Shown here: piece after piece, positions 1,010 to 39,700 of the stretch
Layout: each line of letters opens with the position of its first letter
Position numbering within the stretch: position 1 is the stretch's first letter
Origin: Rebecca billardiae RCC1528
Taxonomy: Eukaryota > Protista > Haptophyta
NCBI GenBank assembly: GCA_965240325.2
Contig: OZ251224.1
Span: 1,116,001-1,180,000, forward strand
Length of the DNA: 64,000 bases
Direction of reading: 5' to 3'
Made by a program: the position numbers and the translations under genes
The notes under the pieces: model-generated
Seen by the model: the letters and a program-made list of their open reading frames with translations, nothing else
The model's database searches: none
Told to the model about the DNA's origin: nothing

Positions 1010-1435
1010 GCCAGCCGCCGTCTTCGCCATCAGCGTCGGCGGCTAGCTGCCTTGAACCTCACGGAGCCAGCGAGCCAGCGGCTCCCTCGCTTTGACGCGC
1101 TCTACTCGAGTCTCGACCCGAAGCCCTTCCGCTCGCAAGCGATCTCGTCCAGGCCTCGTGGAGGGTGGAGAAGGACACAAAAAAGGAGCGAAGATTGCTG
1201 AGATGCTAAGGAGATTGCGGCCAAGCCATCATGCCTTCCGGGACGACCATTGGCTCGTTTTCTTCCTGATTCCAGTCTTTCGCCTGATGGTATTGAGATA
1301 ATATGTCTCACTTTGGCGACCGCTCATTTTTCGATCCCCCCCCAACCGACCAATGGGAAGGCGGAGCCGCGACTCGCTCTGAAAATGCGTGAATTGTTTC
1401 GCGGTCTGGCGGACCGGCCCGTGGAAAAACGCAGC

Positions 1436-1925
1436 GGGCTAGTCCGGGCCAGTCCGGGCCATGGCCGCCGCGCTGCCGCCGCGCCAAGACCCCCCCCCAC
1501 CCGACCGCCCGACCCGACCCGACTGCCCGACTGCCAGTGCCACGCCGCGCCAAGACCCCCCCCCCCGACCCGACCGCCCGACCCGACCCGACTGCCCGAC
1601 TGCCACGCCAGTCCGGGGCTAGTCCGGGCCAGTCCGGGCCATGGCCGCCGCGCCGCCGCCGCGCCAACTGCCAAGACCCCCCCCCCACCCGACCGCCCGA
1701 CCCGACCCGACTGCCCGACTGCCAGTGCCGCGCCGCGCCAAGACCCCCCCCCACCCGACCGCCCGACCCGACCCGACTGCCCGACTGCCATGCCAGTCCG
1801 GGGCTGCCACGCCAGCCCGGGGCTAGTCCGGACCAGTCCGGGCCATGGCCGCCGCGCCGCGCCGCGCCAAGACCCCCCCCCCCCCCCACCCGACCGCCCG
1901 ACCCGACCCGACTGCCCGACTCGGG
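1436..1925 (+). repeat. Complex minisatellite, G4-forming on the minus strand
   Basis: Five copies of GCCAAGAC(C)n-ACCCGACCGCCCGACCCGACCCGACTGCCCGACT inside a ~180-200 bp higher-order unit starting GGGCTAGTCCGG (1436, 1616, 1820). Confidence 0.9.
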
Positions 1926-1954
1926 GCCACGCCCCGGCCGCCCGGCCGGGGCAC

Positions 1955-2490
1955 AACGCGCGCGCGCCGCGCTGGGTGGACAAATGGGGGCGTGGCGCGC
2001 GCGCGCGCGCCGTCGCGCGGCCGACGACCTCGGTCGCCAGCGCGCTCGCCGCGCGACCGCGGCGCGCGTGGCCGGGTGCGCACGCCGCGGGCGGCGCAGC
2101 GCGAGGACGGACGGGTCGCCGCGCCGCGCCGCGCGCGCGCCGCGCCGGGTGGACAAATGGGGGCGTGGCGCGCGCGCGCGCGCCGTCGCGCGGCTGACGA
2201 CCTTGGCCGCGCGCGCGGGCCCCCCGCGCACGCGCGCGCCGCGCCGGGTGGACAAATGGGGGCGCGGCGCGCGCGCGCGCGCCGTGCGGCCGACGACCTC
2301 GGTCGCCAGCGCGCTCGCCGCGCTACCGCGGCGCGCGTGGCCGGACGCGCACGCTGCAGGCGGCGCCGAGCGCGAGGAGACGGGTCGATGCGCCGCGCAC
2401 GAGCGGCCCGCCCGGCTGAGCCAACCGTGACTGCCCGCCGCGCCGTGCGCGCGCCTTGTCCGGGTGGACAAATGGGGGCGTGGGGGCGCC
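1955..2490 (+). repeat. Imperfect direct repeat array
   Basis: Four copies of GGGTGGACAAATGGGGGCG (~1974, 2146, 2246, 2462) with shared (GC)n-rich flanks. Confidence 0.85.
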
Positions 2491-2741
2491 GGCGCCGCAT
2501 CAGCGTGGGCACGTAAGCGTTCGACCGCTCAGCCGCGCAGCTTCCAACTCCGATATGTATAATTCTGAATATATAATAATGATGCTGACGTCGTCTGCCC
2601 GTCCGCACTGACCACTGTGTGCTGAGGATGCATTCTGACCGATATGCGACTGTTACAGTTATTGATTGCCGCGTCGTCGTCCTAACTCTAAACTCAGACT
2701 AACATTAACAAGTGGCGCGGCCGAGCAGCTAGCTGCAGCAG

Positions 2742-4526
2742 CTAAGTTCCGCCGAAGGCGTCGGAGCAGAGCGCCGCAAACGTCTGGCCAGGGGCGGGCA
2801 GCGCCGCGGCGGTGCCGCAGCCGGCCTCACGGGCGGGCTGCTGCGCGGGGCCGCAGCACCCGCGCGCGCACGCGCCGCTGGGCAGATGGCGGTACGGCAG
2901 CCCCCGGAGGCCAACGGCGCGCGCGCCGCCGCGCCGGCCGCCAGCAGCGGCGACGCACACAGGATCACCGCAGCACAGGTCCATGCCGTCGGCGTTGGCG
3001 ACGTAGTAGACGGTCCTGCTCGCATGCTCGCCGCGCTTGCGCTCGCACCACCTGCTCGTGGTCGAGCACGTCGCGATGCGGCCGTGCGGCGTGCTCCCTG
3101 CGTACACCCGCTGGACGCGCGGCCAGTGCCCGGCGGCGCCTGCGCCGGCCGCGTGCGCGACGAGCTGCGCGTTGAGCCACGCGACGAGCGCGCCGCGCCC
3201 CGCGGCGCGCGCGCAGAGCGGCGCCTGCGGGTGTGGCGGCGGGCACGGCGGCGCACGCCGCGCCGCCGCCGGCGCGCCGGGGCGGGCGCTGCCCGCCGCG
3301 GCGCTCGCGGCGAACTCGAAGCGCTCGGTGCGCAGCCGCGTCAGCGCGAGCCAACGCGCCGGCTCGCAGCGCTGCCGCAGGGCGTGCCCGGCCGGCAGCG
3401 CCGAGAGCCAGGCGCAGCGCACGACGCCCGAGCCGTCGGCAGCGACGACGGCGGCGGGCAGGTAGGGCGGGCCGCCGTCCGCCTTGGCCGTGAACGGCAA
3501 GCGCAAGCCGGAGCGGTAGATCGACCCATCGACCTCGGCCTTGGCAAAGAGGGCGCGCACAGGGCTCGCCTGCAGCCGCACGTCCAGCTCCCGCGCGACG
3601 CGCTGCGCCTCCGAAGAGCTCAGGACCGCACTGTCGCCCCAGGTGGCGTGCAGGCCCGCGCGGAACAGGCCGGCGTCGTCCGCGGCGACCCCGAGGCGCG
3701 AGGGCGTCGCCGCGCGCGCCGAGACGTGCACGGCGTGGCCGCGCGCGGGACGGGGCACGCTGTGGAACGCAGCGTCTGCCGCGTCGTAGAGGTCGACGAG
3801 CAGCGCGGCGAGGGCGTCGTACGAGGGCATGCGGGAGAAGCGCAGATCCACGTCGACGCCGAACCGCGCGCGCGCGCCGAACGTCTCGACGACCATGGGC
3901 GCGCGCGCGCCAAGCAGCGCGTACGACGACGCGACGAGCGCGTCCAGCCGCGGCAGAGAGGCGCTCGGCACGTGCAGCCGACCGCCCACCCTGTGGCCGT
4001 CGGCGTCGCGGAGGAACACAATCTCGTGGGTGCACGGCTCGTCGCCGCCGGCGCGCGCGCGATTTGCCCCGGCCGGTGGTAGCACGGGCGGTCGGGCGTG
4101 GCAGTCCGAGGCAGTCGGGCGGTCGGGTCGGGTCGGGCGGTCGGGTGGGGGGGTCTTGGCGCGGCGTGGCACTGGCAGTCGCCGTCGGGCAGTCGGGTCG
4201 GGTCGGGCGGTCAGGTGGCCCGCCAAGCACAGCGGCCGTGGTCGGGTGCCGCCCGCCAGCACGGCGGCCGTGGTCGGGTGGGCCCGACTGCACCGCTCAA
4301 CAGCTAGGGATGACGAGGAATCGGGCGTGTCACGTCGGCCAATCAGAGCGCGCGCGCGTGCGCGCCCAGTTACAGCTTCCCGCACTCTTCCTGGAAACTC
4401 CAGATTCCTGCAAAAATGGCAGGATAGACCAGCTCCTCCTGACTCCTGTGCATTGTTTTCACGAGTGACTTCATGAAGGAGCTCATGGTGCGCATGGATG
4501 CTGCCGCATAGCCCATCGCGGGCCAT
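2742..4526 (-). CDS. AEP-superfamily primase-polymerase (NCLDV/herpes-PrimPol clade) with C-terminal UL52-type zinc finger; true start uncertain
   Basis: Motif I FGVDVD (DxD at 3846-3854), motif II GLHATW (3639-3656), motif III VDGSIYRSGLRLPFTAK (3483-3533), Zn finger RWCERKRGEHAS...CCGDPVC (2955-3053), and an N-terminal GGRLHVP like NCLDV primases. The first ~160 codons run through repeats. Confidence 0.85.
   Translation of the reverse strand: MARDGLCGSIHAHHELLHEVTRENNAQESGGAGLSCHFCRNLEFPGRVREAVTGRARARALIGRRDTPDSSSSLAVERCSRAHPTTAAVLAGGTRPRPLCLAGHLTARPDPTARRRLPVPRRAKTPPPDRPTRPDRPTASDCHARPPVLPPAGANRARAGGDEPCTHEIVFLRDADGHRVGGRLHVPSASLPRLDALVASSYALLGARAPMVVETFGARARFGVDVDLRFSRMPSYDALAALLVDLYDAADAAFHSVPRPARGHAVHVSARAATPSRLGVAADDAGLFRAGLHATWGDSAVLSSSEAQRVARELDVRLQASPVRALFAKAEVDGSIYRSGLRLPFTAKADGGPPYLPAAVVAADGSGVVRCAWLSALPAGHALRQRCEPARWLALTRLRTERFEFAASAAAGSARPGAPAAARRAPPCPPPHPQAPLCARAAGRGALVAWLNAQLVAHAAGAGAAGHWPRVQRVYAGSTPHGRIATCSTTSRWCERKRGEHASRTVYYVANADGMDLCCGDPVCVAAAGGRRGGARAVGLRGLPYRHLPSGACARGCCGPAQQPAREAGCGTAAALPAPGQTFAALCSDAFGGT
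4088..4212 (-). repeat. Inverted copy of the 1436-1925 minisatellite unit
   Basis: GCAGTCGGGCGGTCGGGTCGGGTCGGGCGGTCGGGTGGGGGGGTCTTGGCGCGGCGTGGCACTGGCAGTC is essentially the reverse complement of the left-array unit. Confidence 0.9.
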
Positions 4527-5146
4527 CGCCCGCCCGGGGCGCCAAGTTTGAAGTTAAAACTATTATTAAAAGTACGCGACTCGACGTGCGTCGTAATCGT
4601 TATTCACTTATTCCTCAGATAAGAGGATGACGAGACCGCGACGTTTCGGTGAGCTGTTGCACCGCCACCGGGCCGGCCAGATACTAGATAGATAGGCGAG
4701 GTGAGCCGCGCGGACATACAAGTCCCTTGGTGCCGTTCAGCTCATTCAGCTCGTTCACGTTATTGGCCATTGGCCGATTGGGCGTTTCGGTTCAGCCGGA
4801 CTCACCTGACCCTGTCGATCACCGCGTGCGGCAAGCAGCCGACCGCGAATGGCCGCCATGCCGATGCGAGGCGGACGAGCTGCAGGGCGCGCGCAGCCTG
4901 AGCCCCGGGCAGTCCCGAACGAGACCGCACCCGAGGGTGCGGCCTTACCGCCGCATGCGGCGCTCGGCCGCAGCCATGAATGACTCCGCCTGCGCGGCGC
5001 CGCAGCAGCTTGCTCCTCGCGCCCTCGGCAGCGGCGCTGTGCAGGTCAGCGCGCGAGGCTGGTGAGATTGCGTTGAGAGGGGTGGGACCATCGCGCAGAG
5101 AGGCATCGGCGCCCCCCGGGCCGCCGCCCACTCCCCCGCGCGCGCA

Positions 5147-6329
5147 TCAGCGCACGCCGGCGACGTCGAGGGCCTCGAGCAGCGGCGTGTGGAACTCGGC
5201 CTCGAGCGGTGTGAGGGGCGGACGGATGCCCGGCCCCGCGCGCCCGAGCTGCTCGAGCGCCCACTTGACAGGGATGGGGTTGGACTGAATGAAGAGGCGG
5301 CGGTGCAGGAGCTCGAGCTGCGCGTTGAGCTCGCGCGCCCGCGCCGCGTCGCCCACGCGCGCGCAGGCCATCACCTCGTGCTGCTGCGCCGGCGCCACGT
5401 TGCTCGTGACTGAGATGGTGCCGTCGCCGCCCGCCAGCACAAAGTCGACGGCCGAGGCGTCGTCGCCGCTGTAGAGGAGGAAGTTGGGGCCGCACAGCTC
5501 GCGCAGCGGCGCCACGCGCATCACGTCGCCGGTGGCCTCCTGCCCGCGCGCCCGGCATCGCGCGGGGAGCCCCGGAGCGTGAGCGTCGCGGGCGGGGCGG
5601 CTTTGCGCGGGGCGGCTTTGCGCTGCTCGGCGCGCCGCGCGCCGGCGTCAGCACGCGGGGCTCGCGCGCGGCGCGTCGCACCTTCAGGCCGACGATGCGC
5701 GGGTGCGCGCTGAGCTGGCCGGCGGTGATGGGCGTCATGTCCACGCCCGACCGGCCGGGCACGTTGTACAGGATGATGGGCACGTCCGACTTGTCCGCCA
5801 CGCGCTCAAAGTGCTTGACCAGCCCCTTCTGCGTCGGCTTCACGTAGTACGGCGTCACGACCAGCACGCCGTCCGCACCAAACTCGGCCGCCTCGGCGTT
5901 CTGCTCGATCACTCGGTCGGGCGAGATGGTTCCGGTGCCGTAGATCACGGGGATCTTGCCGCTGGCCTCCTCCTGCGTGATGCGCATCACCTGCCGCTTC
6001 TCGTCGCGCGAGAGGACTGAGGCCTCGCCGGTCGTGCCGAGGACGACGAGGCCATCGCTCTGGCTCTCGATGTGCCATCGGATCATGGCGCGCAGCATCG
6101 CCTCGTCGACGCGGCCATCGCTGTCCATCGGCGTGACCATCGCCACCAGGCTCCCGCACGGCAGACCGTCGCCACGCTCGCTCAGGCTGATCGTGCAAGC
6201 GACGCTGCGCGTCGCTCGCCTCTTCGTCGCCAGCAGACGCGGCGACTCACGGGGGCCACTCTGCCAGCCAAGCGCACTTCCGGCCGCACACGCAAGTGCG
6301 AGCGCCACAGTCGTCCGGGCCGACCACAT
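5147..6329 (-). CDS. dapA: Dihydrodipicolinate synthase, probably plastid-targeted, 2 exons
   Basis: GTTGE, TPYY, YNVPGRS and IVGLK|EATGD motifs. Intron 5540-5681 (GT..AG). Signal-like N-terminus MWSARTTVALALACAAGSALG. Confidence 0.95.
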
Positions 6330-6531
6330 CGCCCCGCTGGACTTGCCTGCTGCCACCACCCCGGGGGATCGACCGTGGAGTCGTGCGTGGACCGCTGTTG
6401 AGCAGCCGCGCGCGCGGCGGCACACACGCCGTGCAGTTCTTGAGCGGCCTCCGGACTTGGCGACGTGGGCTACGGGGCTGTGGGCAAAAACCCCGGACAG
6501 CTTGCGATCGGTGCCAACCGCCGCGAGACAA

Positions 6532-7671
6532 ATGGCGACCACCTCCGCGGGGCTGCTCGGCAATGTGCGCACATTGCTCCGCGGGGCGCAGAGCAGCCCC
6601 GCAGGGTCGTCACCGCGTGCTGGCGTCGACGTGGGCAACCGGTCGCCGCCACAACTCTCGCCGGCGGAAAGAAGGCTGGACGCGAGCGCGACACGAGAGC
6701 CGGCACCTCCAGCCGCGCACGCCGCCGAGGTCACGCGTGTGCAGGCGCATGAGTGCCCGCGCGACACAGAGCAGATGCAAGCGCGGCTGCTGCAGGCGTG
6801 CCTGAGGCACATGCGCACGGCGCACGCGTCCCGCCACCTCCGCACCGTCTTCCTGGCCTGGCACGCCGCGTGCAAGCGACAGATCGCCGCGGTTGGCCCT
6901 GAGCAGCGAATACAGAAGCTCGAGGCGGAGGTCGCGCACTGGCGCAGATCAGTGGACGGTGCGCGAGAGGTGATCGACGAGCAGCAGCGCAAGATCGGCG
7001 AGCAGTCGCTCCGTATTGCCTCTCTCGAGAAGGATGTCGCCGCCCTCACCCACGGCGAGCGCGCCAGCGCGCTCGTGCGCGTCGTCGACGAGCAGACGCG
7101 CGCCATGAGCGACCTGCAGCTGCAGCTGGCGACGATGGCGCGCGCAGAGCTGGGCGCGCGCGAGGAGCACTCGCGCAAGCTCGCGCAGGTCTCGATGCAC
7201 CTTGCGGAGCAGGCGACGCGCCTCGCTGTCGCGGCCAAAGATCGCGACGTGCGCGAGCAGGCACTCGCGGCCGCGCGCGCAGCGTCGGCGAGCGCACTCT
7301 CGAGCGACGCGGATCAGACGTGCATCGATCTGGAGGAGATCGAAGTCCTCCTGCAGCGCACCCTCGCGGAGAAGGTGCAGGCGGAGGAGCAGCTGGTCGA
7401 GAGCAAGATGATGTCGGCGCAGCTGCTCGCCGAGCAGGCCGTGTTGCGCAAGGCCCTTCTCAAGGCGCAGCGCACCACGCACGAGGTCGCGCAGCATGCG
7501 GCGCGGTGCGAGGAGCGAAGGCTGCGCGGCATGCCGGGCAGCGCTGCGCTGTCCCCTGCCCGCGGGACTCGCTCGCCGCAGAGCGATCCCAGGCCGTGGG
7601 GAAGTAGGCACACCGCTGGCGATGGCCACGCTTCGAACTCGTCGCTGATGATGCTCCCGAGTAGTCCGTGA
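6532..7671 (+). CDS. Coiled-coil protein of unknown function
   Basis: Long ORF with E/Q/L/A heptads. ATG 6532 is in frame, ~200 bp from the divergent dapA start. Confidence 0.65.
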   Translation: MATTSAGLLGNVRTLLRGAQSSPAGSSPRAGVDVGNRSPPQLSPAERRLDASATREPAPPAAHAAEVTRVQAHECPRDTEQMQARLLQACLRHMRTAHASRHLRTVFLAWHAACKRQIAAVGPEQRIQKLEAEVAHWRRSVDGAREVIDEQQRKIGEQSLRIASLEKDVAALTHGERASALVRVVDEQTRAMSDLQLQLATMARAELGAREEHSRKLAQVSMHLAEQATRLAVAAKDRDVREQALAAARAASASALSSDADQTCIDLEEIEVLLQRTLAEKVQAEEQLVESKMMSAQLLAEQAVLRKALLKAQRTTHEVAQHAARCEERRLRGMPGSAALSPARGTRSPQSDPRPWGSRHTAGDGHASNSSLMMLPSSP

Positions 7672-7770
7672 GTTCCGATCAGAAAAATAGCTATCCCTAT
7701 CGAGTAACTATCGTCGTCACTATAATCGTCACTGTCACTGACTCACATCATCGATGTTTCTTACTATCGA

Positions 7771-7802
7771 ACGCCTTAACCAAGTGTGCACGTTAAAACA
7801 TA
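7771..7802 (+). repeat. Short remnant of the right end of the CAGTTTACTA TIR family
   Basis: ACGCCTTAACCAAGTGTGCACGTTAAAACATA is identical to the copies near 8950 and 18506. Confidence 0.8.
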
Positions 7803-8770
7803 TAGCGCTATATATATTTAACGACGTGGCAGCATCGGACAAGCGTCAGGCTCAGAGTGCAACAGACACATAGAATGCGTCCGCGCCTTCCGTCCAGGTC
7901 AGACAGTGCGCCACCCGCAGCCCTGCCCCCTACGGGAGCGGGGCCGGGATGGAGCACCGCCTCGGCCTGGGGCACGCGGCGGCGACGGCAGATGCCGCCG
8001 CGGCCGAGCGCCTTCCGAAGCACTTGGATGAGGGTGAGGTCGTAGTCGATGTCGCCGCCCGCCGACCTAGAGGCGAGCAGCTCCGGCAAGCGGCAGCCGC
8101 GGCTGTCGCCCCCGTGCCCGTGCGCTATATATATATAGTAAAATGTAGGCGCCTATATTCGTCATGCTCTACTGCTATGATATGTCGCGACCACCGCGCC
8201 ACCTCGGGCCTGGCAGACACCAACGAGTCATCCTCTGTGCGCGCGTTCGTCGGGGGCTCTCGAGGACTACGGGGGGGGGGGGGGGGGGGGGGGGCGAGGA
8301 GCGCTGATCACCACATCCTCACTCGAGGATACTGGTGATTGGCTGCGCCCGCGATGACACTGCGCCGCATCAATCTGAAACGATGCCCGCCGCGGCACCG
8401 AGTCCACACATGAACTCGGACGGATGCAAACGAGTGCTGAGCCAAATAACAGCGCAGAGCGTGCCATCATAATTTGGCATGGTAGTTTGGAACTCGACGT
8501 ATGTCAAACGCACGAACGTCTAGCAGTGATGGTCCACCATTCAGCGCGGGCGCTCCCGCGCTGGTAGTGGGCTAGTGGTAGTGGTACGTACCCATAATCT
8601 GAAATCGCCGCGTCGAGCGCGATCATCGCCGCCTCGTCACTCAAATGACGCGTTGCTGATGTCATGAGTCCATGGAATCCGTTGCATCCTCCTGACCTAC
8701 TGCCGGGGCCTGCTTTGATTCGACGTGAGCCCCACAGAGCCCCACGGCGACATCCGGCAAAACGCGGCAC

Positions 8771-8988
8771 AAGGTGCAGCACCCTCCCCGTGTGGTGTCA
8801 GAGCGCGCTCTCGAGCGCGTGCCTCCGAGCGCGGGGCGGCCGCTTGCTGCAATGGCCGCCTCGATGAGGTGCGGCAACGCGCCCCTCACCTGCCTGCGCC
8901 GGTCTGTTTTGTGGCGGTGTCTTTGTGCAGTGTTGGATGGCGTCAATCACGCCTTAACCAAGTGTGCACGTTAAAACATAGTAAACTG
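8771..8988 (+). mobile_element. Right end of a TA-flanked TIR family (CAGTTTACTA ends)
   Basis: ~220 bp shared with 62264-62488, and its 3' part with 18435-18545. Ends TAGTAAACTG|TA, the reverse complement of the left end TA|CAGTTTACTA at 18800. Confidence 0.75.
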
Positions 8989-9758
8989 TAATGAAACGGC
9001 GGATTGCCCGCTGGGCCTGGTGCGGGTGCCGGCGTAGTGCAGAGTAGTGGCGGCCCCGCGGCACGTCGTTGGCGCGTGCTGAACCGCAGAACCGCAGCAG
9101 CAACAGGCCCGCTGCAAGCTGCAAGGACCCTGCCCTGCCTTGGCTGCGTCGCGCCAGTGCCATGTGGCGACCCAGGCCAGTTGATAGAAAGATGCGAATG
9201 ATAGGCTGCAATCGCGGAAATCAGCCCTACACGCTCCGCCGCCACCACCTTGCTGTGTCGAGCGCTTGAGATGCTTCAGGTAAATCAGGTTGCGTGCGCT
9301 CGCATGCAGCCTGCAGCCTGCATTTGAACGAGAACGTGATCGCACAGACAGGTTAGTTGGGCGGATCGTCAGGCATCCTCGGCGTAGACTTCGACACGAT
9401 GCGTGCCACGCGCACCCATGCCACGCGGAAAGGCGTGCGCACGCGTCCTCGCGCATCTGGCACTCCAGCAGGCTGCAGTCTTGCCCAAGATGTGAGAACA
9501 AGCCTGCCAGGGACCTCGCCGCGCGAGCGCGAGCGCGAGCGCGCGGAGGGTTCGTGGACATGGGAGACGACCCCTGGTGCCTTGTTGGGGAGCACAACTC
9601 CTCCCTCCTCACGGCTGCGAGCAGCGACACCGGAGCTAGATCGCCGTATTCAGCACTCCTCGCTGAGTGCAGCGTGACCCTCGGAGGCGTGCGTCTCGGC
9701 TTCCGCGGAGCCTTTTGCGCCGGACCCCAACGGGGCGTGATGAACACCGATCCACGGC

Positions 9759-10871
9759 CAAGGGTAGTAAGGGTGAGCAACTCCGCTGGCGACAGCCGCG
9801 AAGGTCGGGAGCCCTCTGTTTGCCGCAAGCGGAGCGGAGCGAGTACTATCAGCGGCGGAGGGCGCTGAGGCCGCGCACGGCGTGAGGCGCGGCGTCGGAC
9901 GAGTCGGTCCGCGGAGGATGCGCGGCGATCGGCCTGCTGCGCAGCGGCAGTGTGCCTCACTTTGCCCCGAGCGCCGTCCTCCGCGTCGCCTCCTTCCCGC
10001 CTTGGAGCAGCACGCATGTGCGCGCCACCACCTTGAAGGCGGCACGGGCTTGCTCAGACGACCGCGCGCGTGTGGCGCGCGACTTGGTCGGCTGCGCGCG
10101 CGCGCTGCCGCGGTGCAAGGTAGCGCCGCCGCATGCGCGCGCCGTGCCAGCGCGAGAGCGTGTGCGCGGACCTGAGTGCGACCTCACACACATGTCGAAT
10201 GCTGCTTGGCATCCGACTTGCCGACCGTGACGGGAAGCTGGAAAAGACAGCGGCGTGAGTGTTGGTACCATCGATGCGGAGCCTTAGCGTCCACTTGTAT
10301 TCGTGCTGGGAAGGAATACACAAGACTAGGCCTTCGTCCTGGGTATCCAATGTCACTTAACACCTCGCTGATCGACCCGACGAGTGCCAGCGTGAGGCAC
10401 AGCGAATCATTCGTGAGAGCAGGCAGACAAGCGAGCACTACGCTCATGAGATGGCCGTGAGCAAAGGCTCGCGCGGGCACGGCGCGCGCATGCCGGCATG
10501 CGGCGGTGCTACCTTGCACCGCGGCAGCGCGCACGCGCAGCAAACCAAGTCGCCGTCCACTTGCTCAGTCGTCTGAGCAAGCCCGTGCCGCCTTCAAGGT
10601 GGTGGCGCGCACATGCGTGCTGCTCCAAGGCGGGAAGGAGGCGACGCGGAGGACGGCGCTCGGGGCAAAGTGAGGCGCACTGCCGCTGCGCAGCGGGCCG
10701 AGCGCCGCGCATCCTCCGCGGACCGACTCGGCCGACGCCGCGCCTCACGCCGTGCGCGGCCTCAGCGCCCTCCGCCGCTGATAGTACTCGCTCCGCTCCG
10801 CTCGCGGCAAACAGAGGGCTCCCGACCTTCGCGGCTGTCGCCAGCGGAGTTGCTCACCCTTACTACCCTTG
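9759..10871. mobile_element. P-like foldback element with ~400-bp TIRs
   Basis: Inverted arms ~9759-10157 and ~10466-10871 start CAAGGGTAGTAAGGG. 7-bp TSD CCACGGC at 9752-9758 and 10872-10878. Confidence 0.9.
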
Positions 10872-12515: not shown

Positions 12516-13894
12516 CAGTGTCAGTCAGTGCCGTGAGTGGCCGGCGCAGAGCAGTGAGTCCTACATAGCTACAGTTCTGACTGCTGTACCAACCCGCAGC
12601 CTCCGACTCGCTGCTGGCAGCCTAACTAGCCATGCATCAACCTTGAAATGGTGAAATCGTTCGTCTGTCCCGTCCCGGCCGCGGGGCCCGGCAGCACGGT
12701 TTGGCCCGCGCCGCCTCGCGGAGGGCGCGCCGGGCCGGCCCAAGCTCTATCACTACTGCTATGCTACTGCATGCCGCGCTACAAATATAACTTTAATCAG
12801 AATAATGACCGCGTTCCGCGGTCCTTTCGTAGAACCAACGTAGTTAGGGGGCCGCGGTGCCGACTCTCTGTCGGCTTGCTAACCGAATAAGCCAGTATGT
12901 ATCGTCATACAGACGCTGGCTCTGGCTCCGGTTGACCCCTGCCAGTCCGGTCATAGAAACCGGGCGTACCGAAAATGATCTTCGCATTCCTGCGGCGCCG
13001 AATGAACGCCCGAACTCCGAAGTGTCCCACAGGGCTCCAAGTAGGGTTACTATGGATGGCCAATAAGTGCCCAGGGTGTGAAACTCAGTTTGTGACTACT
13101 TCAGACTCTATTTTTCATAGCTATTTACCCAGTCCGGTGACATATTTCCAATAGCTACGGGTGCATCCGGATCGCTCCCGGACCGTGTTCTGACCAGAGT
13201 CTGAAATGGGTAAATACATAGTAATGATCGGCTACGCCGATCTACATAGTAAAAATAGATCGAGTCTGAACTATAGAGGAAGTGCTTGTTGGCCCAATAT
13301 CGCTCTGAAGTCATCATCTAGGCATCCATTGAGGTCCTCCTGTGCAGTTTTCACGAGTGACTTCATGAAGGAGCTCACAGTGCCCGTCTCTGGCAGGGGT
13401 CAACCGAAGCCAGAGCCCGCTGTCTGTCATCTAATTATTATAGTCTGACCGTCGGTGCCAACCAACAGTTCGCCTGTGAGCAGTGCCACTACGGCTCACT
13501 GGCACTCAGAGTCACTCAGTTGCCCGCCCACTCTCCGGGCCCGGGCTGCGGCCCGGGGGCCGAGCGAGGACTCTGGATCGCCGATGGCGATACGGCCCGA
13601 GTCCGGCGACTAACTACTGCCGCATGGGCCATGCCACTCGTCAAGCCTCAAGAGTCAAGAGTCAAGGCTCCGGCTCGCAGCGGCACGTCGCCGTCGGCTT
13701 GCCTCGGCAACTCGGCCGGGGCCGATGGCGATGCCCGATGCCGATGGCGATGCCGATGGCAGCCCGGGGCCGCACGCCCCGCCACCGGATTCCGGAATGG
13801 CTGCGCGGCTACAGTAGTCCCGCGACCCGGGGCCGCCCGGCGCCAGCGGGGTGACGGCCAGCCCCGGAGGCGGTTGCGACCAGTCCCTCGAGTA

Positions 13895-18434: not shown

Positions 18435-18545
18435 CGCGCCCCTCACCTGCCTGCGCCGGTCTGTTTTGTGGCGGTGTCTTTGTGCAGTGTTGGATGGCGT
18501 CAATCACGCCTTAACCAAGTGTGCACGTTAAAACATAGTAAACTG
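18435..18545 (+). mobile_element. Right end of the CAGTTTACTA TIR family
   Basis: Identical to ~8878-8988 and followed by TA. Confidence 0.75.
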
Positions 18546-18801
18546 TAGACGACCCGGGACCAAGGCCAACGCGCTCCAGCGACATCCTCCATTAACTCCA
18601 TTCAGTACTTCGACAGACGAATCAGGAGAGCTGCGCCCTCGTGCCTGTGTCTTTAAATCATAGAATTAGTCTGGGCTGGCTCTTGGCTGGCTGGTCCGGA
18701 TCCAGATCTGTGTCCGGGTGCGCAGTCCTACGGGTGAGAACAAAGGAATACAGGGTGGGGGAGCCCCGGACTGCAGTCTGAAAGCGGCCCCTTCAACTTT
18801 A

Positions 18802-18856: not shown

Positions 18857-19450
18857 CAGGTGGATACGGGCTAACTGGACACAGGGGCTATCTGGACACT
18901 CAGCGGGCGGCGGGCCTCGTGGCGAGGGCTCGTGGGCGAACGAGCACGAGCGCCCACTGGCGGGTCGCCACGACGGCGCACGATGTTCGCTGAACTCACC
19001 TGGTCGTGAGACGTCGTCTGCGCACGCGCCAGGTCGCGCTTCTCGCCGCCTTCGCCTTGTTTCGTGAGTCCCGCGCACAAGGGCGAACGCCAGCGTTTCA
19101 AGCCGCAAGGCGCGTGCGCGGACTCAGGAAGGGCGGACTCCGAGGCAAGGCGCGGTTGCGCTGGCGTGGGTAGGTCCCAGAGCAACCGTCCGAGCCGCTG
19201 CACACGCTTTTCCTCCGCGCGCGCGTCTCTGAGCTCGATTCCCATGCCTCAGCCAGTGCCAGGGGCTAATTGGACAGTGCCATTGCGGCCGCCACGCGCG
19301 GAGACGGGCCCGCAGCGCAGAAAGCGCGCTGTGGCGGAACTCCAGGGACCCCCTGAAGTCCGTCCCTGGCGCCCCTTCGACCCCAATGCTCCCAGGGAGG
19401 CCTCCGCGTGAGTTGGGTCGGCCACTGTCCAGATCACCCGTATCCACCTG
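18857..19450. mobile_element. TA-flanked MITE-like element (Tc1/mariner type)
   Basis: TIR CAGGTGGATACGGG-nnnn-CTGGACA at both ends (21/25 identical). TA at 18855-18856 and 19451-19452. Confidence 0.85.
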
Positions 19451-19452
19451 TA

Positions 19453-20470
19453 GTGGGCACGCTGCGGCCGCATGGCGGCCGGCCGCCCGCCGCCCACGCG
19501 AACAAAAGTCCGTGCGCGGGCGTGGTGGGCACGCACGTGTCGATGGCGTAGGGCTGGCAGGTCCGTATGTGTCATGGCCGATCCCCCGGCGCGTTTGAGA
19601 CCCCATCCCCGGCGCCTGAGGCACCACACATGCTGGCGATGACAGATGTCGTGTTCAGCACGGGTTGCTGTGCACGCGCCGGTACGGCGGGGTGGTGCAC
19701 ACGGAGAGAGGGCCTAGAAAGGGGTGGCGTGAGTTCTCACAGGTCTGGTCTCTACTGACGTCGCCCGGCGCGCGCATCGTGTGTCCCAGTAGGCTTGGAA
19801 GCTTCTTAAACACCGCTTGTTCCACTATACCACGAACACTCTTCCTTTCGGCCTTTCCAAACAAACATTACGCAACTCGGCAACTGAGAGGTTTGTGTGT
19901 GGCAGGTGGCGATGGGGCAGAGCCATGGCATGAGCTCAATTCCAGGGCGCAAGTAGCCGTCAAGTAGCCGGTTGAGCTGTTAGACTGCCCACGCAGGACA
20001 CACAAGACCTAATGGGCTCCCTCTCTGCGAACTCTTCAGCCTGAACGCCTCGCTGGGGTACACGCCCAAGTGGTGCGTGTGTGAGCAGTGAGCATGCTTT
20101 ACCGTCAGCCAACAAGAAGCACTGAACAGGCCGCCCATCCTTATGACGCGCCGCGCCGGGCGACGTCAGTGGAGACCAGACCTGTGAGAACGCACGCCAC
20201 CCCTTTCTAGGCCCTCTCTCCGTGTGCACCACCCCGCCGTACCGCGCGTGCACAGCAACCCGTGCTGAACACGACATCTGTCATCGCCAGCATGTGTGGT
20301 GCCTCAGGCGCCGGGGATGGGGTCTCAAACGCGCCGGGGGATCGGCCATGACACATACGGACCTGCCAGCCCTACGCCATCGACACGTGCGTGCCCACCA
20401 CGCCCGCGCACGGACTTTTGTTCGCGTGGGCGGCGGGCGGCCGGCCGCCATGCGGCCGCAGCGTGCCCAC
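19453..20470. mobile_element. Foldback element with ~320-bp near-perfect TIRs
   Basis: Arms 19453-19772 and 20152-20470 differ at ~3 positions. TA on both sides. Confidence 0.88.
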
Positions 20471-20590
20471 TAAAGTTGAAGGGGCAGCTCCCGGACTCGG
20501 CCCCCGAACCTTACTATGAATGTGAGAAAGCGGCCTCCGCCAACTCGCGGCCGGCCTCGCTCGCGACCTTCGCCGATCACCTGCCTGCGG

Positions 20591-22012: not shown

Positions 22013-22145
<133 letters not shown>

Positions 22146-31557: not shown

Positions 31558-33521
31558 TCAGTGTTGTGCTGCCGTGCCACTCGACGGGCCGTGTGCACCT
31601 GTCACGCCCACATCTGCGTCTGCTGCAGACGTGCCGCCCGACAGCTTGCCCTTTCGTCGCTTCGTCTTTGTGTGCCGCATGATGAGCCGCTCGGCCTGCT
31701 CCTTGACGTCGTGCGCCGAGAGCACGTTGTCCTTCGGCAGCTCGGGGTCGTCCTCGTCCTCGTCGTCGTCGTCATCCCCGTCGAGGTCGTCTTCGTTGAT
31801 GCGCACGTTGTTCTCCTTGCTCGTGAGCAGCAGCACGCGCTCGTCGGGCACGGTGGACATGATCGTGGCGGTGATCGTGGCGCGGGAGGCGACTGTGGGC
31901 GCCGTGTCCTCGGTCTTCGAGTCTCGCGTCGCCACCGCCGCCGCATCCTGCGTGCTCTGCAGCAGGCGCTGGATGTTGCGCACGCAGTACTCCAGGCCCT
32001 GCGGGAGGGAGGGAGGGAGGGAGGGAGGGAGGGAGGGAGGGAGGGAGGGAGGGAGGGAGGGAGGGAGGGAGGGAGGGAGGGAGGGAGGGAGGGAGGGAGG
32101 GAGGGAGGGAGGGAGGGAGGGAGGGAGGGAGGGAGGGAGGGAGGGCGGGAGGGAGCGCGCACGCGAGCGCGGGCCGAGTGAGCGCCCGAAGCGGGCGCGG
32201 GTTGCGCGACGCATGGCGCCTGGGCGGAGGCGCGCTCGTGCGCGCACCTCGAGCGTGCTCTCGTCCGTGTCCAGCGTCCCGCCAAAGCTGTCCAGGTCGA
32301 CGGGCGCCTTGGCGAGCAGGTCGATCATGTGCTGCACGCCCGCACGCGCGTCGACGAGCGTGCGTGTCGTGCGCTTGAGCCGCGCGTCGTGCTGCGCGTT
32401 CCAGCCCGAGTGCGCCGTGCCCGTGCGCTCGCCCGCGAGCAGCGCGTCGACGGGGCTCTCGCCATCGGCCCCGTCCCCGCCGTCCGCCGCCTCGGTCGGC
32501 GTCGACGGCCCGGCCTCGTCGATGCCGACGCCCTCGTACCGAAAGCGCTCGACCGCCTCGTGCGCCTCGAGCTTGGCCTGCTTCGTCGCGTTGATGCGCT
32601 TCTGCGAGTCCTTGGTCATCAGGTTGAGCATGTTGTACGTGTCCTCCTGCCGGAGGAACTTGCTGATGATGTCCTGCACGTCCGACGCGCCGGCCACGTG
32701 CTGGATCTGCTTGAACTGCTCGTCGTAGAAGGCGATCTGCTCGAGCTCCTCCTCGACGGTCGTCGGGTTGCGGATCGTGCGCTCGATCGAGGCCTGCGCG
32801 GCGTCGCGCGTGGCCTGGATCTCCTCGCGCCGCTGCGCCATGCGCTTCTCGTGGTCGACAGACTGCTCTCGTCGCTTCGCGAGGTTGCGCTCCCGCCGCA
32901 GCAGCTCGCGCTTCAGCTGCCGTTGCTCGTTGTGCGCGCTCGCCTCCGCCTCCAGCCGGCTGTGGTTGGCCTCGTCCTTCACGTGCGTCGCGTCGCGCAG
33001 CATGAGCTGAAGCTCCACCTCGTCCTGCTCCTTGGCGTTCGCGGCCGCCGTGACGCGCGAGAGGTCCCGCGTGAAGTACGCCCCCTCGCGCTTGAGCCGC
33101 TCGATCATCTGCAGGTACGTGAGGCGCGTCTCGTCCACCTCCTCAATCTTCTGCTCCATCTCGCTGATCTTGTCCTTGAGCTCGTCGAGCTCGTTGGTCT
33201 GCGGGAGGCCGGAGGCGGCGAACTTCTCCTGGTGCTGTATGGCCTCGAGATGCTGCTGCAGGGCGCGAATGCGCTGCCTCTTGTCCTCGCAGGCTGCGCG
33301 GTGCGCGCGCGTCGAGGGCAGCGCGCAGATCGGAAGCGTGAGCGCCAAATGCGCCATGGGCGAGGGCCAGGGTAGCTTTGGGCCGCGCGCGCGCACGAGC
33401 GCGTTTGGGCGCGCACACACGCACAGTGCCTCGTCTCGTCGTGCTTCCGACGGAGCGCCGACACCTCGTGCCGCAAACTCTCCTCATCGTCCCCACTCCC
33501 CACGTGAGACTTGCCCGCCAT
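31558..33521 (-). CDS. Outer dynein arm docking complex coiled-coil subunit (CCDC151/ODA-DC-like), 3 exons
   Basis: Coiled coil with TYLQMIERLKRE and YDEQFKQIQHVAGASDVQDIISKFLRQEDT. Introns 33294-33424 and 31999-32247. Confidence 0.7.
32003..32155 (+). repeat. (GGGA)n tetranucleotide repeat in an intron
   Basis: ~38 GGGA units with one interruption. Confidence 0.97.
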
Positions 33522-33786: not shown

Positions 33787-36700
33787 ATGGCGCAGGACGC
33801 GAGGAAGACGTACCTCGCGCAGTGCGCCGTCAACATCCTTGGCGTGGAGCTTCCCGTGGAGAACGGCGTCTCCTGGGCCGACAGCCCCGCCGCCCTCCGC
33901 GCGCAGATAGAGAACGCGCCCGAGCTCGCGCGGTACCTCGAAGAGTCCACGGTGCCCGTCATGCAGGTGGCGTGCGTGGTGGACTCGGGGCGGTACGTCC
34001 TCCGCGTGTCGGACAGCTCGATCCTGCCTTCCAACTGCGAGCGCGCCGCCCTCTTCACCAAGTGCAGCGTCGAGCCGATCACCGCGTCGAACGTGTACCG
34101 CTCCGTGCTCGTCAACCACGTGCAGGGCTCACCCGTCACCGGCCTGCACTCGCTGCTGCACCACGTGTACAGCCCGCTGCTCTGCGACGAGGGCAGCCAG
34201 TGGTCGTCCAAGCTCGACTCCAAGTCTCGCGGCCTGATGCTGCAGGTCGAGCACGCGCTGAGCGCCGTCGCGAATGGCGGCGACGCGCCCGCGCACAGCG
34301 CAGGCACCGAGGGCGACGACGCGTCCGGCATCCTGACGCCCGCGGACGAGTGCCGGCACTGGCAGCAGGTGGCCAACCGCGCCGTGGGGGTGGGCATCGA
34401 CGCGACCGCCGTCGCCCGCGCGCAGGACTTCTGGCAGGCCCTCGAGCCCGTCGCGGAGCAGCTGGAGGGCTTCCACGAGCTGAGCGCGGCCGAGGCGCTC
34501 GAGGTGCTCGACTCGCTGCAGGACACGGTGGACAGCCTGTGGCGCAAGGGGTACCCGGAGCGGCGGATGGAGCACTTCATGCGCGTCATCGGCTCCGCCG
34601 TCGACGGCTACGTCAAGCGCAAGCTCTCGGCCGTCGACCTGTGGCGCGCGCCGTACCTGCGCATCACGCGCGCGCTCAAGGACGCGAGCGCGCTCGCCGA
34701 GCGCTGGGCGACCGTGTGCCACGAGCAGACGACGCTGTACTGGCCGAAGGACGAGCACCCGTGGTTCGGCGGGCCGTTCCGCGACCCGACCCTCGAGTCG
34801 CTCGCTGCGCGGCTCGACGACCTCCTCGGGCTGCGCGTCGTGCACCAGCAGCTGACCGCGCTGCTCGACGAGCCCGAGGTGCGCGAGCTGCGCGTACACG
34901 CCGTCTTCGACGCGTTCGCCGGGATCAACCCGCTGCACCACTCGGAGTTCTCGCGGCCGAAGTGGGCGGCGGCGATGGCCGCGTACCAGCGCGCGATGGA
35001 CGACATCGAGCTCCGCGTCGCCGACAAGCTGCGGCCGTCGCTCTCGGCGGCGGGCGCGCGGCCGCAGGCGCTGCTGCGCGAGTTCCTCCACTACCGCGAG
35101 CTGATCGCGCGGCCCAACCTGTCGCGCGCGCTCGCGCCGGAGCGCGAGATGCTGCTCGGCCAGCTCGAGGGGCACCTCTCCTCGCTGCGCGACGACTTCG
35201 ACGCGCGCACCGGCGCGCTGCTCGAGGGCAGCGGCGCCGGCTCCGGACGCGGCGCGCAGGTTGGCAAGAACCTCTCGGGCGTCGTGCACCGCGCGGTGCT
35301 CACGCGCCAGCTGCTCGCCAAGGTGGACGAGATGGTGCAGGCGACGGACGCGCTGATGGCGGACCTGCAGGGCGCCGAGCGCTTCCGCGCGAAGGCGGAG
35401 GACCTCAAGTCGTACCTCACCGACTACGGCGACCAGCAGTTCCACGAGTGGGCGGAGGAGGTGGAGCGCGCGCTGATCGACGACGCGCAGGGCATGCAGC
35501 TCAAGGGGCGGCTGATGGTGATCAACCAGGAGGACGCGTCGCTCGTGGTGAACTTCTCGGACCGGCTGGTGCAGTTCCTGCGCGAGGTGCGCCAGCTCTC
35601 CGCCGTCGGGTACACCATCCCCAAGAGCATCGCCTCCGAGGCGGAGGTGGCGAAGGTGTTCTACGCGCGCGCGGTCGCGCTGAGGCAGGTGACGAACACG
35701 TACAACAAGCTCGACGCCGAGGTGATCCGCTCGCAGAAGCCGCTGCTGCTGAACGAGGTGCTGCGCTTCGAGAAGATCGCGACGAACCCCACCTCCGGCT
35801 CCAAGGCGCCGATCACCTGGTCCGACAAGGAGCAGGTCGAGCGGTACACGCGCGACCTGCACGAGGCGCGCGAGCGGCTGCAGGAGCAGATCCGCAAGCT
35901 GCGGCGCACGCACCAGTCGTTCGGCGACGAGGTGCAGCGGCTGATGGCGACGTCGCTGCTGCACCAGCAGGAGGCGTGGAAGCGCGCGGTCGACGACCTC
36001 CGCCGCCGCGCGAACAACATGGAGGCGCACTACCCCGGCATGAAGTCGTGGCGCAACCACTGGGACGTGCAGCTGTACAAGGCGCTCGAGGTGCAGTACA
36101 AGGAGGGGCTCGAGACGCTCCACTCGACGCTGCCGCCGATCGAGGCGGAGCTGCAGTTCAAGAGCCGGCAGCTCGCGTTCAAGCCGCCGATCGAGGAGCT
36201 GCGCACCGCGTACTACAAGAAGGTCAAGGAGTTCATCTCCGTCCCCACCAAGTTCAAGGGGCTGCAGTACTACGACGACGGCAGCAAGGGCGGCGGCGGC
36301 GGCGGCGGCGCGGGCGAGGGCGGCGCCGCCGCGGGGCAGAAGCTGATGACGCTCTCGGTGTTCCGCGAGATGCCCGACCGGAACGTCGAGTCGCTGCTCG
36401 CCGTGTACCGCCAGGCCGCGCAGGTCTTCCGCAAGCTCGACGAGCTCGCCGCGTCGCTCGAGCCGTGGGTGGCGCTCGGGCGGCTCGAGTCGCTCGACGA
36501 GTTTGTGCAGAAGAACTGCGTGGAGGTCGCGCAGTGGGAGGCAAACTACGCGGCGCTCAAGGCGAAGCGGCGCGAGTCGGAGAAGCTGCCCAACTTCCAC
36601 AAGGTGGACTGCGTCACCGTCTCGCTCATCCCGTTCAAGGCCGCGCTCGAGGACCAGTACGCGCGCATGAGCGGCGCGCTCGCCGGCTCGATGAAGTCTG

Positions 36701-39700
36701 CGTTCGAGGCGCAGCGCGCAGAGGTCGAGGCGTTCATCTCCGAGTCGCGCGAGGCGCTCAAGCTGCCGCCGAGCCCGACGTACGAGGAGATCTTCCAGGC
36801 GCGCGCGGCGCGCGCCGAGATCCGCGACAAGATGCGCGAGGCCGAGGCCACCTTCCGCCAGCTCTCCGAGAAGTCGAAGATGCTCTCGTCCGCGGGCGCG
36901 TCGACCGCGGGCGCCGTGCCCGACCTGAGCGCGCTGCGCGCCGAGTGGGACGAGCTCGAGGTGGGGATCGAGGCGTTCGACGGCGTGGTGGACGAGCTGA
37001 TGCAGCAGCGCCGCGCGGGGATCGGCGAGCGCATCGCCGACGGCGAGAAGGCCGTGACCAACTTCGCCGCGCGCTGGGCGGAGCTCAAGCCGAAGACGAT
37101 CCCGGTCGGCGACGCGGGCGCGCTGCGCGACGTGACCGCGCGGCTCGAGGACCTGCAGAAGGAGTTCGAGGCGGTGGAGCTGGTGTGCGCGCAGGTGACG
37201 GACGAGTGCGAGCACTTCGGCGAGCCCACGCCCGAGTTCGAGCGCAAGGCCGAGATCAAGGCCGACGTCGAGTCCTTCACCGGCGCGATCGGGATGATCA
37301 CCGAGTTCTCGGCCGAGCTCGAGAAGCTCTCGGCCGAGGACTGGATCTCCTTCCGCGGCCGGCTGTGGGAGTTCGAGGACTTCGTCGCGGCGTGGCTGGA
37401 GAAGGCGAAGGGCTGCCCGGCGGGGCCGGTCGCCGACCACCTGCGCGACGCGCTCTCCACGCTGCGCGACGTCGCGCCCAACCTCAAGCTCGTGCGCGGC
37501 GACGGGTTCGAGGCGGTGCACTGGAACGACCTCTTCAAGCGGCTGCGCGTCGACAAGGTCGAGCTCTCGCGGCTGACGCTCGGCCACTTCGTGAAGGCGA
37601 GCGCGGCGATCGTGGAGCACGCGGAGGAGCTGAAGCAGCTCAACGCGCGCGCGACGGGCGAGGTCTCCATCCGCGAGGCCCTCGCCGAGGTGCACGCGTG
37701 GTCGCAGGACACGTCGTTCACGCTCACCGAGCACGCGGAGCGCGAGCGCAAGACGCCGCTCATCAAGGAGTGGAAGGACCTCACCACGCAGGTGTCGGAC
37801 ATGCAGTCGCTGCTCGGCTCGCTGAAGGAGTCGGCGTGGTTCGCGCCCTTCGCCGACGAGGTGAGCGCGCACGAGCGCAAGCTCACCGCCCTCGACGACT
37901 GCCTCGCCAACCTGAACGTGATCCAGCGCAAGTGGGTGTACCTCGAGCCCATCTTTGGGCGCGGCGCGATGCCGCACGAGGCCGCGCGCTTCGAGCGCGT
38001 CGACACGGAGTTCCGCTCGCTGATGCTGCAGGTGGGCGACGACCCGCGCGTGATGTCGATCCTGCGCACGCCCAACCTCGCCGAGACGCTCTCCACCATG
38101 CTCGACCAGCTCGAGCGCTGCCAGAAGGCGCTGGCCGACTTCCTCGAGGAGAAGCGGCAGCGCTTCCCGCGCTTCTACTTCATCGGCGACGACGACCTGC
38201 TCGAGATCCTCGGGCAGGCGAAGAACCCCGAGGTGATCCAGGCGCACCTGAAGAAGCTGTTCGCCGGGATCAACAAGGTCGCCTTCGGCGAGGACAACAA
38301 GACCATCGCCGCGATGCGCTCGCTCGACGGCGAGCTGGTGCCGCTGATCTCGGCGGTGGGCGTGACCGACCAGGTCGAGGGCTGGCTCTCGTCGCTCTCC
38401 GAGCTGATGCGCTCGACGCTGTCGGACGAGCTGGCGGGCACGCTGCGCTCGCGCGAGACGAACCTGCAGAAGACCTCGCAGCAGGTGCTGCTCGTCTCCG
38501 AGATGATCAACTTCACCGCCGACTGCGAGGCGGCGCTGAGCGGCGGCGGGCGCGCGCTGTCCAAGCTGCGCGCCGACCTGCTCGCGCGGCTCAACGAGTA
38601 CACGCAGCTCGAGACCGACTCGGCCCTGCTGCAGACGAAGCTCAAGGCGGTGCTGCTCGACCTGATCCACAACATGGACGTGGTCGACCAGCTCCTCCGC
38701 GCGAACACCGGCTCGCCCGCCGAGTGGCAGTGGCGCAAGCAGCTGCGGTACTACGCGCCCGAGCAGGCGCGCGGCTCGGGCGCGTGCACGCTCACGATGG
38801 TCGACGCGTCGTTCGACTACACGTTCGAGTACCAGGGCAACGCGGCGAAGCTGGTGCACACGCCGCTGACGGACAAGTGCTACCTCACGCTCACGCAGGC
38901 GATGCACATGGGCTACGGCGGCAACCCGTACGGCCCGGCGGGCACGGGCAAGACCGAGTCGGTGAAGGCGCTCGGCCAGGCATTCGGCCGGCAGGTGCTC
39001 GTCTTCAACTGCGACGAGGGCATCGACTCGCAGTCGATGGGGCGGATCTTCGTCGGCCTCGTCAAGTGCGGCGCGTGGGGCTGCTTCGACGAGTTCAACC
39101 GCCTGCTGCCCGACCAGCTCTCCGAGATCTCGCAGCAGATCCAGCTGATCCAGCACGCGATCAAGACGCGCCAGCCGCAGGTCGAGCTGCTCGGCGCGCC
39201 CGCGACCGTCGACCTCAACGCGGCGATCTTCGTCACGATGAACCCGGCGGGCAAGGGGTACGGCGGGCGGTCGAAGCTGCCGGACAACCTGAAGGCGCTC
39301 TTCCGCGCGATCGCCATGTCCGCGCCGGACAACGAGCTGATCGCCGAGGTGATGATGTACTCGGAGGGGTTCAACCACGCCAAGGAGCTCGGCTCCAAGC
39401 TCGTCGCCATCTTCAAGCTCTCCAAGCAGCTGCTCTCGCCGCAGCAGCACTACGACTGGGGGCTGCGCGCGCTCAAGACGGTGCTGCGCGTCGCGGGGCA
39501 GCTCGTCGCCTCCGAGAAGAAGCGCACGGGCGGGCAGCCGCTCTCGCGCGCGGTCGAGGAGTCGGCTGTGATCAAGGCGCTGCGCATCAACACGCTCTCC
39601 AAGCTCACGTACGGCGACACCGAGGCGTTCAACGCGCTGATCGGCGACGTGTTCCCCGGCGCGGCGGTGCAGGACATCGCGTACGACGAGATCGAGGCGG

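Follow-up and report, generated by a model that had tools for sequence, protein, structure and literature searches.

The window analysed here is the whole 64,000-nucleotide stretch of contig OZ251224.1 from the haptophyte Rebecca billardiae RCC1528, and it consists of intron-poor nuclear DNA of a flagellate eukaryote with a GC content of 55-80 %. Near its left end lies a gene for a primase-polymerase catalytic domain (AEP) followed by a zinc finger. With a probability of about 0.65, this gene is an old, solo endogenous member of the stand-alone AEP proteins with a C-terminal UL52-type zinc finger, belonging to the primase clade of nucleocytoplasmic large DNA viruses (NCLDV) and herpesviruses and now residing in the host chromosome. 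The open reading frame (ORF) and the parts of it that carry this reading are the following.

2742 to 4526, minus strand: the ORF described by the first-pass annotation, 594 codons plus stop
about 2745 to 4070, minus strand: the coding and homologous part (~440 codons), in one frame throughout, delimited by codon-position GC, periodicity and the span of the phmmer matches
3327 to 4046, minus strand: AEP catalytic domain with motifs I (DxD), II (H) and III (D), placed by alignments, model, fold matches and hhalign
2892 to 3119, minus strand: UL52-like zinc-finger domain, C-x6-H-x17-C-x4-C, placed by conserved columns and a pLDDT of 70-88

Coding part of the open reading frame

The ORF is uninterrupted, as had been claimed. 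Its length is no proof of a gene, because two further frames across the same stretch, which is 76 % GC, are open as well, for 398 and 442 codons. The dynein-2 heavy chain gene farther along the window has three frames open for 3216-4465 codons, of which the two non-coding ones measure 4465 and 3216, so ORF length means little in this genome. What goes beyond chance at the ORF is codon periodicity together with homology, the latter from phmmer run exhaustively against 1.84 billion cluster representatives, among which two relatives reached expectation values (E) of 2e-37 and 6e-32.

Both signals belong to codons 161-594 and not, as the first-pass annotation had assumed, to all 594. This 434-amino-acid piece was the phmmer query, and its residue numbering is used throughout. 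The GC content of its codon positions 1, 2 and 3 is 0.77, 0.64 and 0.93, the third-position value (GC3) lying within the 0.78-0.99 of the host genes in the window. For codons 1-160 (nucleotides 4047-4526) the corresponding figures are 0.76, 0.67 and 0.65, without coding periodicity, and in a sliding profile periodicity sets in near nucleotide 4080. The phmmer matches span residues 2-414 of the piece, the N-terminus of a paralogue can be aligned as far as about nucleotide 4091, and all homology is confined to codons 161-594, with no homologue found for codons 1-160. About 190 nucleotides within those first 160 codons are an inverted copy of a tandem array located at 1420-1953. Since codons 1-160 have neither periodicity nor a homologue and are partly repeat array, the real gene product is probably not a 594-amino-acid protein. 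The sole in-frame upstream ATG of the ORF, at 4524-4526, lies in a spacer beyond the inverted array (array A', listed below). No intron across that array was predicted by the tools used, and none was common to the relatives. Exact look-ups of the 594-amino-acid ORF and of the dynein ORF returned no match.

Catalytic domain and zinc finger

Motif I of the AEP domain reads D-V-D (D65 and D67), motif II is H133 and motif III is D173, and the corresponding alignment columns are invariant or at least 90 % conserved among the relatives. Within the finger, C334, H341 and C359 occupy invariant columns, and at least 90 % of the sequences have C364. The window protein keeps 54 of the 152 columns that do not vary in twelve viral sequences. 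Thirty viral-invariant columns, including D65, D67, H133, D173, C334, H341 and C359, are kept in all three full-length sequences of the cellular-side clade described below. A C-terminal L-L-P motif also aligns between the window protein and its viral relatives. Glycine, alanine, arginine and proline together make up 49.5 % of the window protein, 30-38 % of host proteins and 27-29 % of the viral homologues.

In an AlphaFold2 model built on a 16-row alignment, the AEP core and the finger have a pLDDT of 75-88. When the PDB was searched with this model, all 48 matches at E of about 0.01 or below (ranks 1-48) were to UL52 of herpes simplex virus 1 (HSV-1) or to the AEP domain of C962R from African swine fever virus (ASFV), and no cellular PrimPol was present in the top 50. 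These two proteins are the best matches among solved structures: HSV-1 UL52 aligned over ~490 columns at E 5e-6, and the AEP domain of C962R (AsfvPrimPol) reached a target-normalised TM score of up to 0.64. They are nevertheless large multi-domain or multi-subunit enzymes, with chains of 766-965 amino acids and either a helicase partner or a superfamily 3 helicase domain, whereas the window protein has no helicase and is 13-17 % identical to them. Among the viral models of BFVD, the best fold matches were C962R-like AEP proteins of medusavirus, pandoravirus and a Feldmannia virus, together with a clandestinovirus primase/polymerase and primases of pithoviruses and alloherpesviruses.

By analogy with the family (PMC5295015, PMC4027207, PMC10516667), the enzyme would act like UL52 and PrimPol, in that on single-stranded DNA it would start short primers and extend them. 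Each of the two acidic motifs would take part in binding two divalent metals, and the histidine of motif II would contact the incoming nucleotide. The finger would bind the template and the initiating nucleotide, and would be required for de novo priming.

The first-pass annotation fares well at this level. It had named the DxD, H and D motifs and the C-H-C-C finger, all of which fall in conserved columns, as well as the host-like, GC-rich codon usage, which the GC3 of the conserved part bears out. Its assignment to a giant-virus type of AEP with a UL52-like finger is likewise sustained, as is its remark that human PrimPol has DxE, which agrees with PMC5295015. Profile and structure searches, which it had proposed as a check, led to viral-type AEP proteins and, among the seven sequence relatives and the top 50 fold matches in the PDB, to no cellular PrimPol.

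Relatives in viruses

The phmmer scan returned seven relatives at E <= 1e-3 (P0001-P0007), with no cellular PrimPol-like protein among its matches. E-values were 2e-37 for P0001, 6e-32 for P0002 (over residues 2-392), 2e-10 for P0004 and 4e-4 for P0006. Two of these connect the group to a named family, in that P0004 and P0006 exceed the curated cut-off of PF23162 (AEP_C962R, which models the AEP domain at the N-terminus of C962R), P0004 scoring 27.8 bits where 23 are required; P0006 also matches PF18188. In a direct BLASTP comparison, P0006 and the window protein align over 358 residues with 24 % identity (1e-13). A profile of the cellular-side sequences compared by hhalign with a profile of 15 viral sequences gave a probability of 98.8 % and an E of 1e-16 over 275 columns.

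P0006 and its relative P0017 sit on contigs of 70 kb and 113 kb that bear NCLDV major capsid protein (MCP) genes, along with PCNA, an mRNA-capping methyltransferase and prasinovirus-type DUF (domain of unknown function) families. On three viral contigs the gene order is MCP, NUDIX, a small ORF of 75-78 amino acids and AEP (L001, 6600-11077; L009, 1877-5068; L010, 675-3866), an arrangement that points to a core block conserved in that virus lineage. The viral-type family occupies at least 434 loci in IMG/VR, on contigs of up to 178 kb with a GC content of 0.41-0.57.

The stand-alone AEP proteins of algal giant viruses (PF23162 plus PF18188, prasinovirus-like) thus provide the nearest comparison. 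They share with the window protein the domain order, a core of similar length (346-363 amino acids in the viruses), the DxD, H and D motifs, the C-H-C-C finger and the L-L-P motif. The identity is only 23-28 %, and the window protein itself falls below the Pfam PF23162 model. It further differs by inserts that are modelled with low confidence, by its 49.5 % of Gly, Ala, Arg and Pro, and by its GC3, which is 0.93 as opposed to 0.58-0.60 in the viral homologues. Its gene stands in a host chromosome, whereas the viral ones stand beside capsid and NUDIX genes. The clade as defined takes in D5-like, UL52, A468R-like and PrimPol proteins, and the phycodnavirus proteins called 'A468R-like' belong to the stand-alone form with AEP and finger (PMC4538821). 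The likeness to A468R of PBCV-1 is drawn at the level of that form and not of the protein itself.

Diverged copies on the cellular side

The cellular-side clade amounts to six clusters at 90 % identity in the whole collection (P0001/P0008, P0002, P0003/P0009, P0004, P0005 and P0007). Five of the six are 50 %-level representatives in the 1.84-billion library, and Pfam misses four of those five. A word-index protein search with the single protein as query gave no relative among the matches listed, and the same search with profile A1 gave the viral group only, again among the matches listed. Two scans of JGI metagenome contigs and one of IMG/VR held no close relatives.

Some of these copies come from the genome of the window or from sister genomes. 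An exact match to the PSMD12 protein encoded in the window lies on a 9.9-kb contig from run ERR14847151, beside ANTH as in the window, and this run also contains the paralogue P0004 (on contig L005). P0003 (L007) and P0009 (L093) are from runs ERR14847149 and ERR14847150, and their two contigs are 99.85 % identical. The cellular-side copies are 28-47 % identical to the window copy, and all have a GC3 of 0.88-0.93. No copy above 47 % identity was found among 15 billion proteins, including the assembly of the run from this genome, although short-read assemblies may have missed copies. The window itself holds one copy, and every cluster has one or two members.

Their state of preservation varies. 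On L004 homology to the window protein runs in one frame over residues 2-392. On L005 it is split between two frames, which means at least one frameshift, and on L007 and L093 among three, which means at least two. The frameshifts of L007 and L093 are real, because they are common to two independent assemblies. L006, from the unrelated run SRR22250839, covers residues 169-385 only, and its called N-terminus is unrelated repeat sequence. In periodicity and in the conserved columns that they retain, the broken copies differ little from the window copy, so neither property discriminates a live copy from a decayed one. Beyond GC-rich low complexity, the flanks of the relatives have nothing in common with the window locus and no common termini, save for one 12-nucleotide core.

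Repeats around the gene

The gene is bracketed by inverted tandem arrays whose outer ends cannot be defined to the base. The repeats and the AT-richer segments next to them are listed here.

1420 to 1953, plus strand: tandem array A, about 2.6 copies of a 188-bp unit with sub-units of 66-69 bp, C-rich on the plus strand
1945 to 2480, plus strand: tandem array B, with periods of 99, 173 and 269
2520 to 2741: AT-richer island (GC ~0.5) directly 3' of the stop codon
4100 to 4290, minus strand: array A', an inverted copy of array A with two sub-units and a 32-bp duplication
4291 to 5045: AT-richer spacer between the gene and its neighbour, holding the only ATG of the ORF

Array A' abuts the conserved N-terminus, and the long ORF reads through it. 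A 34-nucleotide core of array A is confined, within the 64 kb, to five plus-strand occurrences in that array and two inverted ones at 4114-4217. Most simply, the inverted arrays would be the outcome of a local rearrangement, an inversion with one break inside the tandem array, and not transposon ends. The AT-richer islands at 2520-2741 and 4291-4800 resemble other intergenic islands of the genome, such as that at 7560-7920. Within the upstream spacer, a 49-nucleotide block at 4443-4491 is 92 % identical to 13337-13383, and the surroundings of the two do not align.

Array B contains a 19-nucleotide motif in four copies, none of which recurs elsewhere in the window. Its 12-nucleotide core, CCCATTTNTCCA, is found four times 3' of the gene (1977-2476, minus strand) and once beside the truncated L006 gene (486-497, plus strand), and it is absent from the remainder of the window and from nine other loci compared. 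The core might be a shared cis element, which is a lead drawn from a pattern picked after both loci had been compared.

The G-rich strand of array A (1498-1920, plus, and 4114-4217, minus) carries at least five runs of three or more G set 1-4 bases apart, and to judge by this spacing it could form G-quadruplexes. PrimPol-type enzymes are reported to reprime beyond such structures (PMC4712188). The occurrence of G-quadruplex potential beside a primase gene may be a coincidence.

Origin of the gene

Support for reading the gene product as an AEP with a UL52-like finger comes from transitive sequence homology, from the comparison of profiles, from fold matches and from the viral setting of the closest named relatives. 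Since viral contigs hold the family in abundance and in conserved gene order, and cellular data hold it very rarely, the gene would have entered the host chromosome from a virus and not the reverse. The capture would have taken place long ago, or from a virus lineage of matching GC content, and the composition of the gene is now fully matched to the host. The window gene would belong to a small family whose diverged copies, several of them decayed, occur in the host lineage, and the repeat array has apparently displaced the original start of the window gene. Endogenous elements derived from Nucleocytoviricota, whether single endogenous viral elements or giant ones (GEVEs), are similar in placing a viral-type gene among host genes and in having diverged and degraded copies. 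They differ from the window locus, which has a single gene instead of a multi-gene block, no compositional contrast and intact catalytic residues.

Several points weigh against this origin. There was no direct match in Pfam, PHROG, NCBIfam or PDB sequences for the whole protein, for each domain or for profiles (the Pfam result extends to E <= 1 for the whole protein and E <= 10 for the separate domains), and hence the family assignment is transitive and structural. The AlphaFold2 model is middling, with a mean pLDDT of 66 and a pTM of 0.49 from its 16 aligned rows. The direction of transfer is read from distribution only. The window starts 1.4 kb left of array A, and host genes are seen on one side of the gene only. 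An ATG was sought between array A' and the conserved N-terminus, and none is present. Decay of the window copy is favoured by its high content of Gly, Ala, Arg and Pro, by a start that is displaced or missing, and by the lack of an ATG after array A'.

Three other origins can be set against capture of a viral primase as a single gene. A chance open frame with motif look-alikes in very GC-rich DNA might be suspected, given that three overlapping frames are open for ~400-600 codons and that databases yield no direct family match, but it is ruled out by the homologues, by the hhalign probability and by fold matches limited to viral primases; the high GC3 is specific to one frame as well. The possibility that the gene is the ordinary cellular PrimPol orthologue of the host, lying beside repeats by chance, is very improbable. 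Cellular PrimPol (CCDC111) does have an AEP followed by a UL52-like C-H-C-C finger with the same C-x6-H and C-x4-C spacings, it belongs to the same NCLDV-herpesvirus clade and is itself thought to be virus-derived (PMC4538821, PMC4027207), and the codon usage of the window gene is host-like. In the human protein the finger is C419/H426/C446/C451, or C-x6-H-x19-C-x4-C (PMC4027207), so that the middle spacing is x19 where the window protein has x17. A motif I of the DxE type is a peculiarity of PrimPol, whose finger has three cysteines and one histidine (PMC5295015), and the window protein has DxD. No PrimPol appeared in the sequence scan or in the leading fold matches, and the closest named relatives sit on viral contigs with capsid genes. 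That the same or sister genomes hold diverged, partly degraded and frameshifted relatives argues further against a single-copy gene. Of these three, the least improbable, and still an unlikely one, is that the gene is the survivor at one end of a larger giant-virus integration (a GEVE) continuing to the left of the window. Positions 1-1400 leave room for it, as they have no coding periodicity, no family match and nothing that anchors them to the host, although their composition is host-like. Only one of the 28 genes of the related viral contig L001, the AEP itself, has a match in the window, and the other 27 have none anywhere in the 64 kb; viral Pfam families are likewise absent from the large ORFs. 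The gene is also fully ameliorated; a larger insertion would be old, and erosion of it is probable.

The first-pass annotation had favoured a small mobile element carrying the primase. In its fullest form this would be a mobile or self-priming element of ~2.9 kb (1420-4290) with the primase as its single gene, arrays A and A' as its ends and array B as an iteron-like origin. The confinement of the array A units to the two sides of the gene, in opposite orientations, fits such an element, as does the presence of the array B core beside the truncated closest relative; the family also exists in several diverged copies, some of them broken, as mobile-element families do. Nevertheless, an inversion with one break inside a tandem array yields the same picture, and the rarity of the 12-nucleotide core, which was defined after both loci had been compared, cannot serve as an unbiased test. 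Domain searches of the large ORFs of the window and of the ORFs of 1-20 kb turned up no capsid, polB, helicase, integrase or transposase; with respect to capsid, polB, helicase and integrase the first-pass annotation had said the same of the vicinity. Counting copies and comparing flanks, which it had suggested as a test, revealed one copy in the window, relatives no closer than 47 % in clusters of one or two members, and flanks on L004 and L005 with nothing in common with the window locus. The ends cannot be placed to the base, and consequently no target-site duplication can be claimed. A mobile element is therefore improbable and, lacking every testable defining feature except the ambiguous inverted arrays, is not supported. 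The bolder proposal that the gene, the inverted G-rich arrays and the 3' motif array form a minimal autonomous primase-only replicon or mobile element of eukaryotes, of a kind undescribed so far, is more doubtful still, and the locus does not establish a new type of transposon.

Functional state

For a captured viral primase, two present-day states may be considered. The window copy may be expressed and constrained, as an independently captured analogue of PrimPol, or it may be a decaying relic whose frame stays open for no other reason than the scarcity of stop codons in 77 % GC DNA. The single frame over the homologous span, the strong periodicity and the presence of all catalytic and zinc ligands favour constraint; composition and the state of the start, as noted above, favour decay. 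On balance the relic is the somewhat likelier of the two, and an active, constrained copy is a serious but lesser prospect.

It can be proposed tentatively that the locus is a second, independent eukaryotic capture of a viral AEP-zinc-finger primase that is still in use. If so, it would parallel the proposed viral origin of cellular PrimPol, the presumed source being a virus of the NCLDV-herpesvirus primase clade (PMC4538821). The locus would be a later capture of the same kind, with host-like composition and every catalytic and zinc residue kept while sister copies decay. Should transcript and population data show constraint, the gene would offer a natural example of a viral primase turning cellular. 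The cellular-side clade, rare and divergent as it is, widens the known sequence range of the family.

Neighbouring genes and other repeats

The first-pass annotation had placed the gene among repeats and not among housekeeping genes. Tandem and inverted arrays do flank it, but the 3' end of a gene for dihydrodipicolinate synthase (DHDPS) is ~520 bp from the ATG of the ORF, and S2, PSMD12, ANTH and dynein-2 genes lie beyond. Three of the host genes are placed as follows.

5049 to 7238, minus strand: DHDPS gene, an exon-bearing ORF (Pfam PF00701, E 3.7e-55)
about 17.8 to 18.4 kb: ribosomal protein S2
33787 to 46929: dynein-2 heavy chain gene, intronless, 4380 codons

Further host genes in the window encode a GFO/IDH/MocA oxidoreductase, PSMD12, ANTH, UCH, a cyclic nucleotide (cNMP)-binding protein, a lipase and MutL. 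A tRNA-Lys(CTT) call at 55836-55914 (minus strand) falls within the span of an opposite-strand ORF of 628 codons that holds a PH domain.

Repeats of other kinds are scattered over the window. A dispersed repeat at 8772-8990, 18435-18547 and 62265-62483, with copies 94.7-100 % identical and no protein family in nearby ORFs, is probably a fragment of a young transposable element. Two foldback-like palindromes of ~1 kb each, at 9759-10871 and 19445-20478, are mutually dissimilar; their arms measure 314+65 and 235+93 nucleotides and are 89-99 % complementary, with loops of ~360-380 nucleotides. Just past the UCH gene, a 284-bp unit is duplicated in tandem (97 %) at 48804-49370, within the window's AT-richest island (GC 0.57 per 2 kb). 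Long perfect microsatellites are present as (AG)63 at 22017-22142 and (GGGA)38 at 32003-32155.

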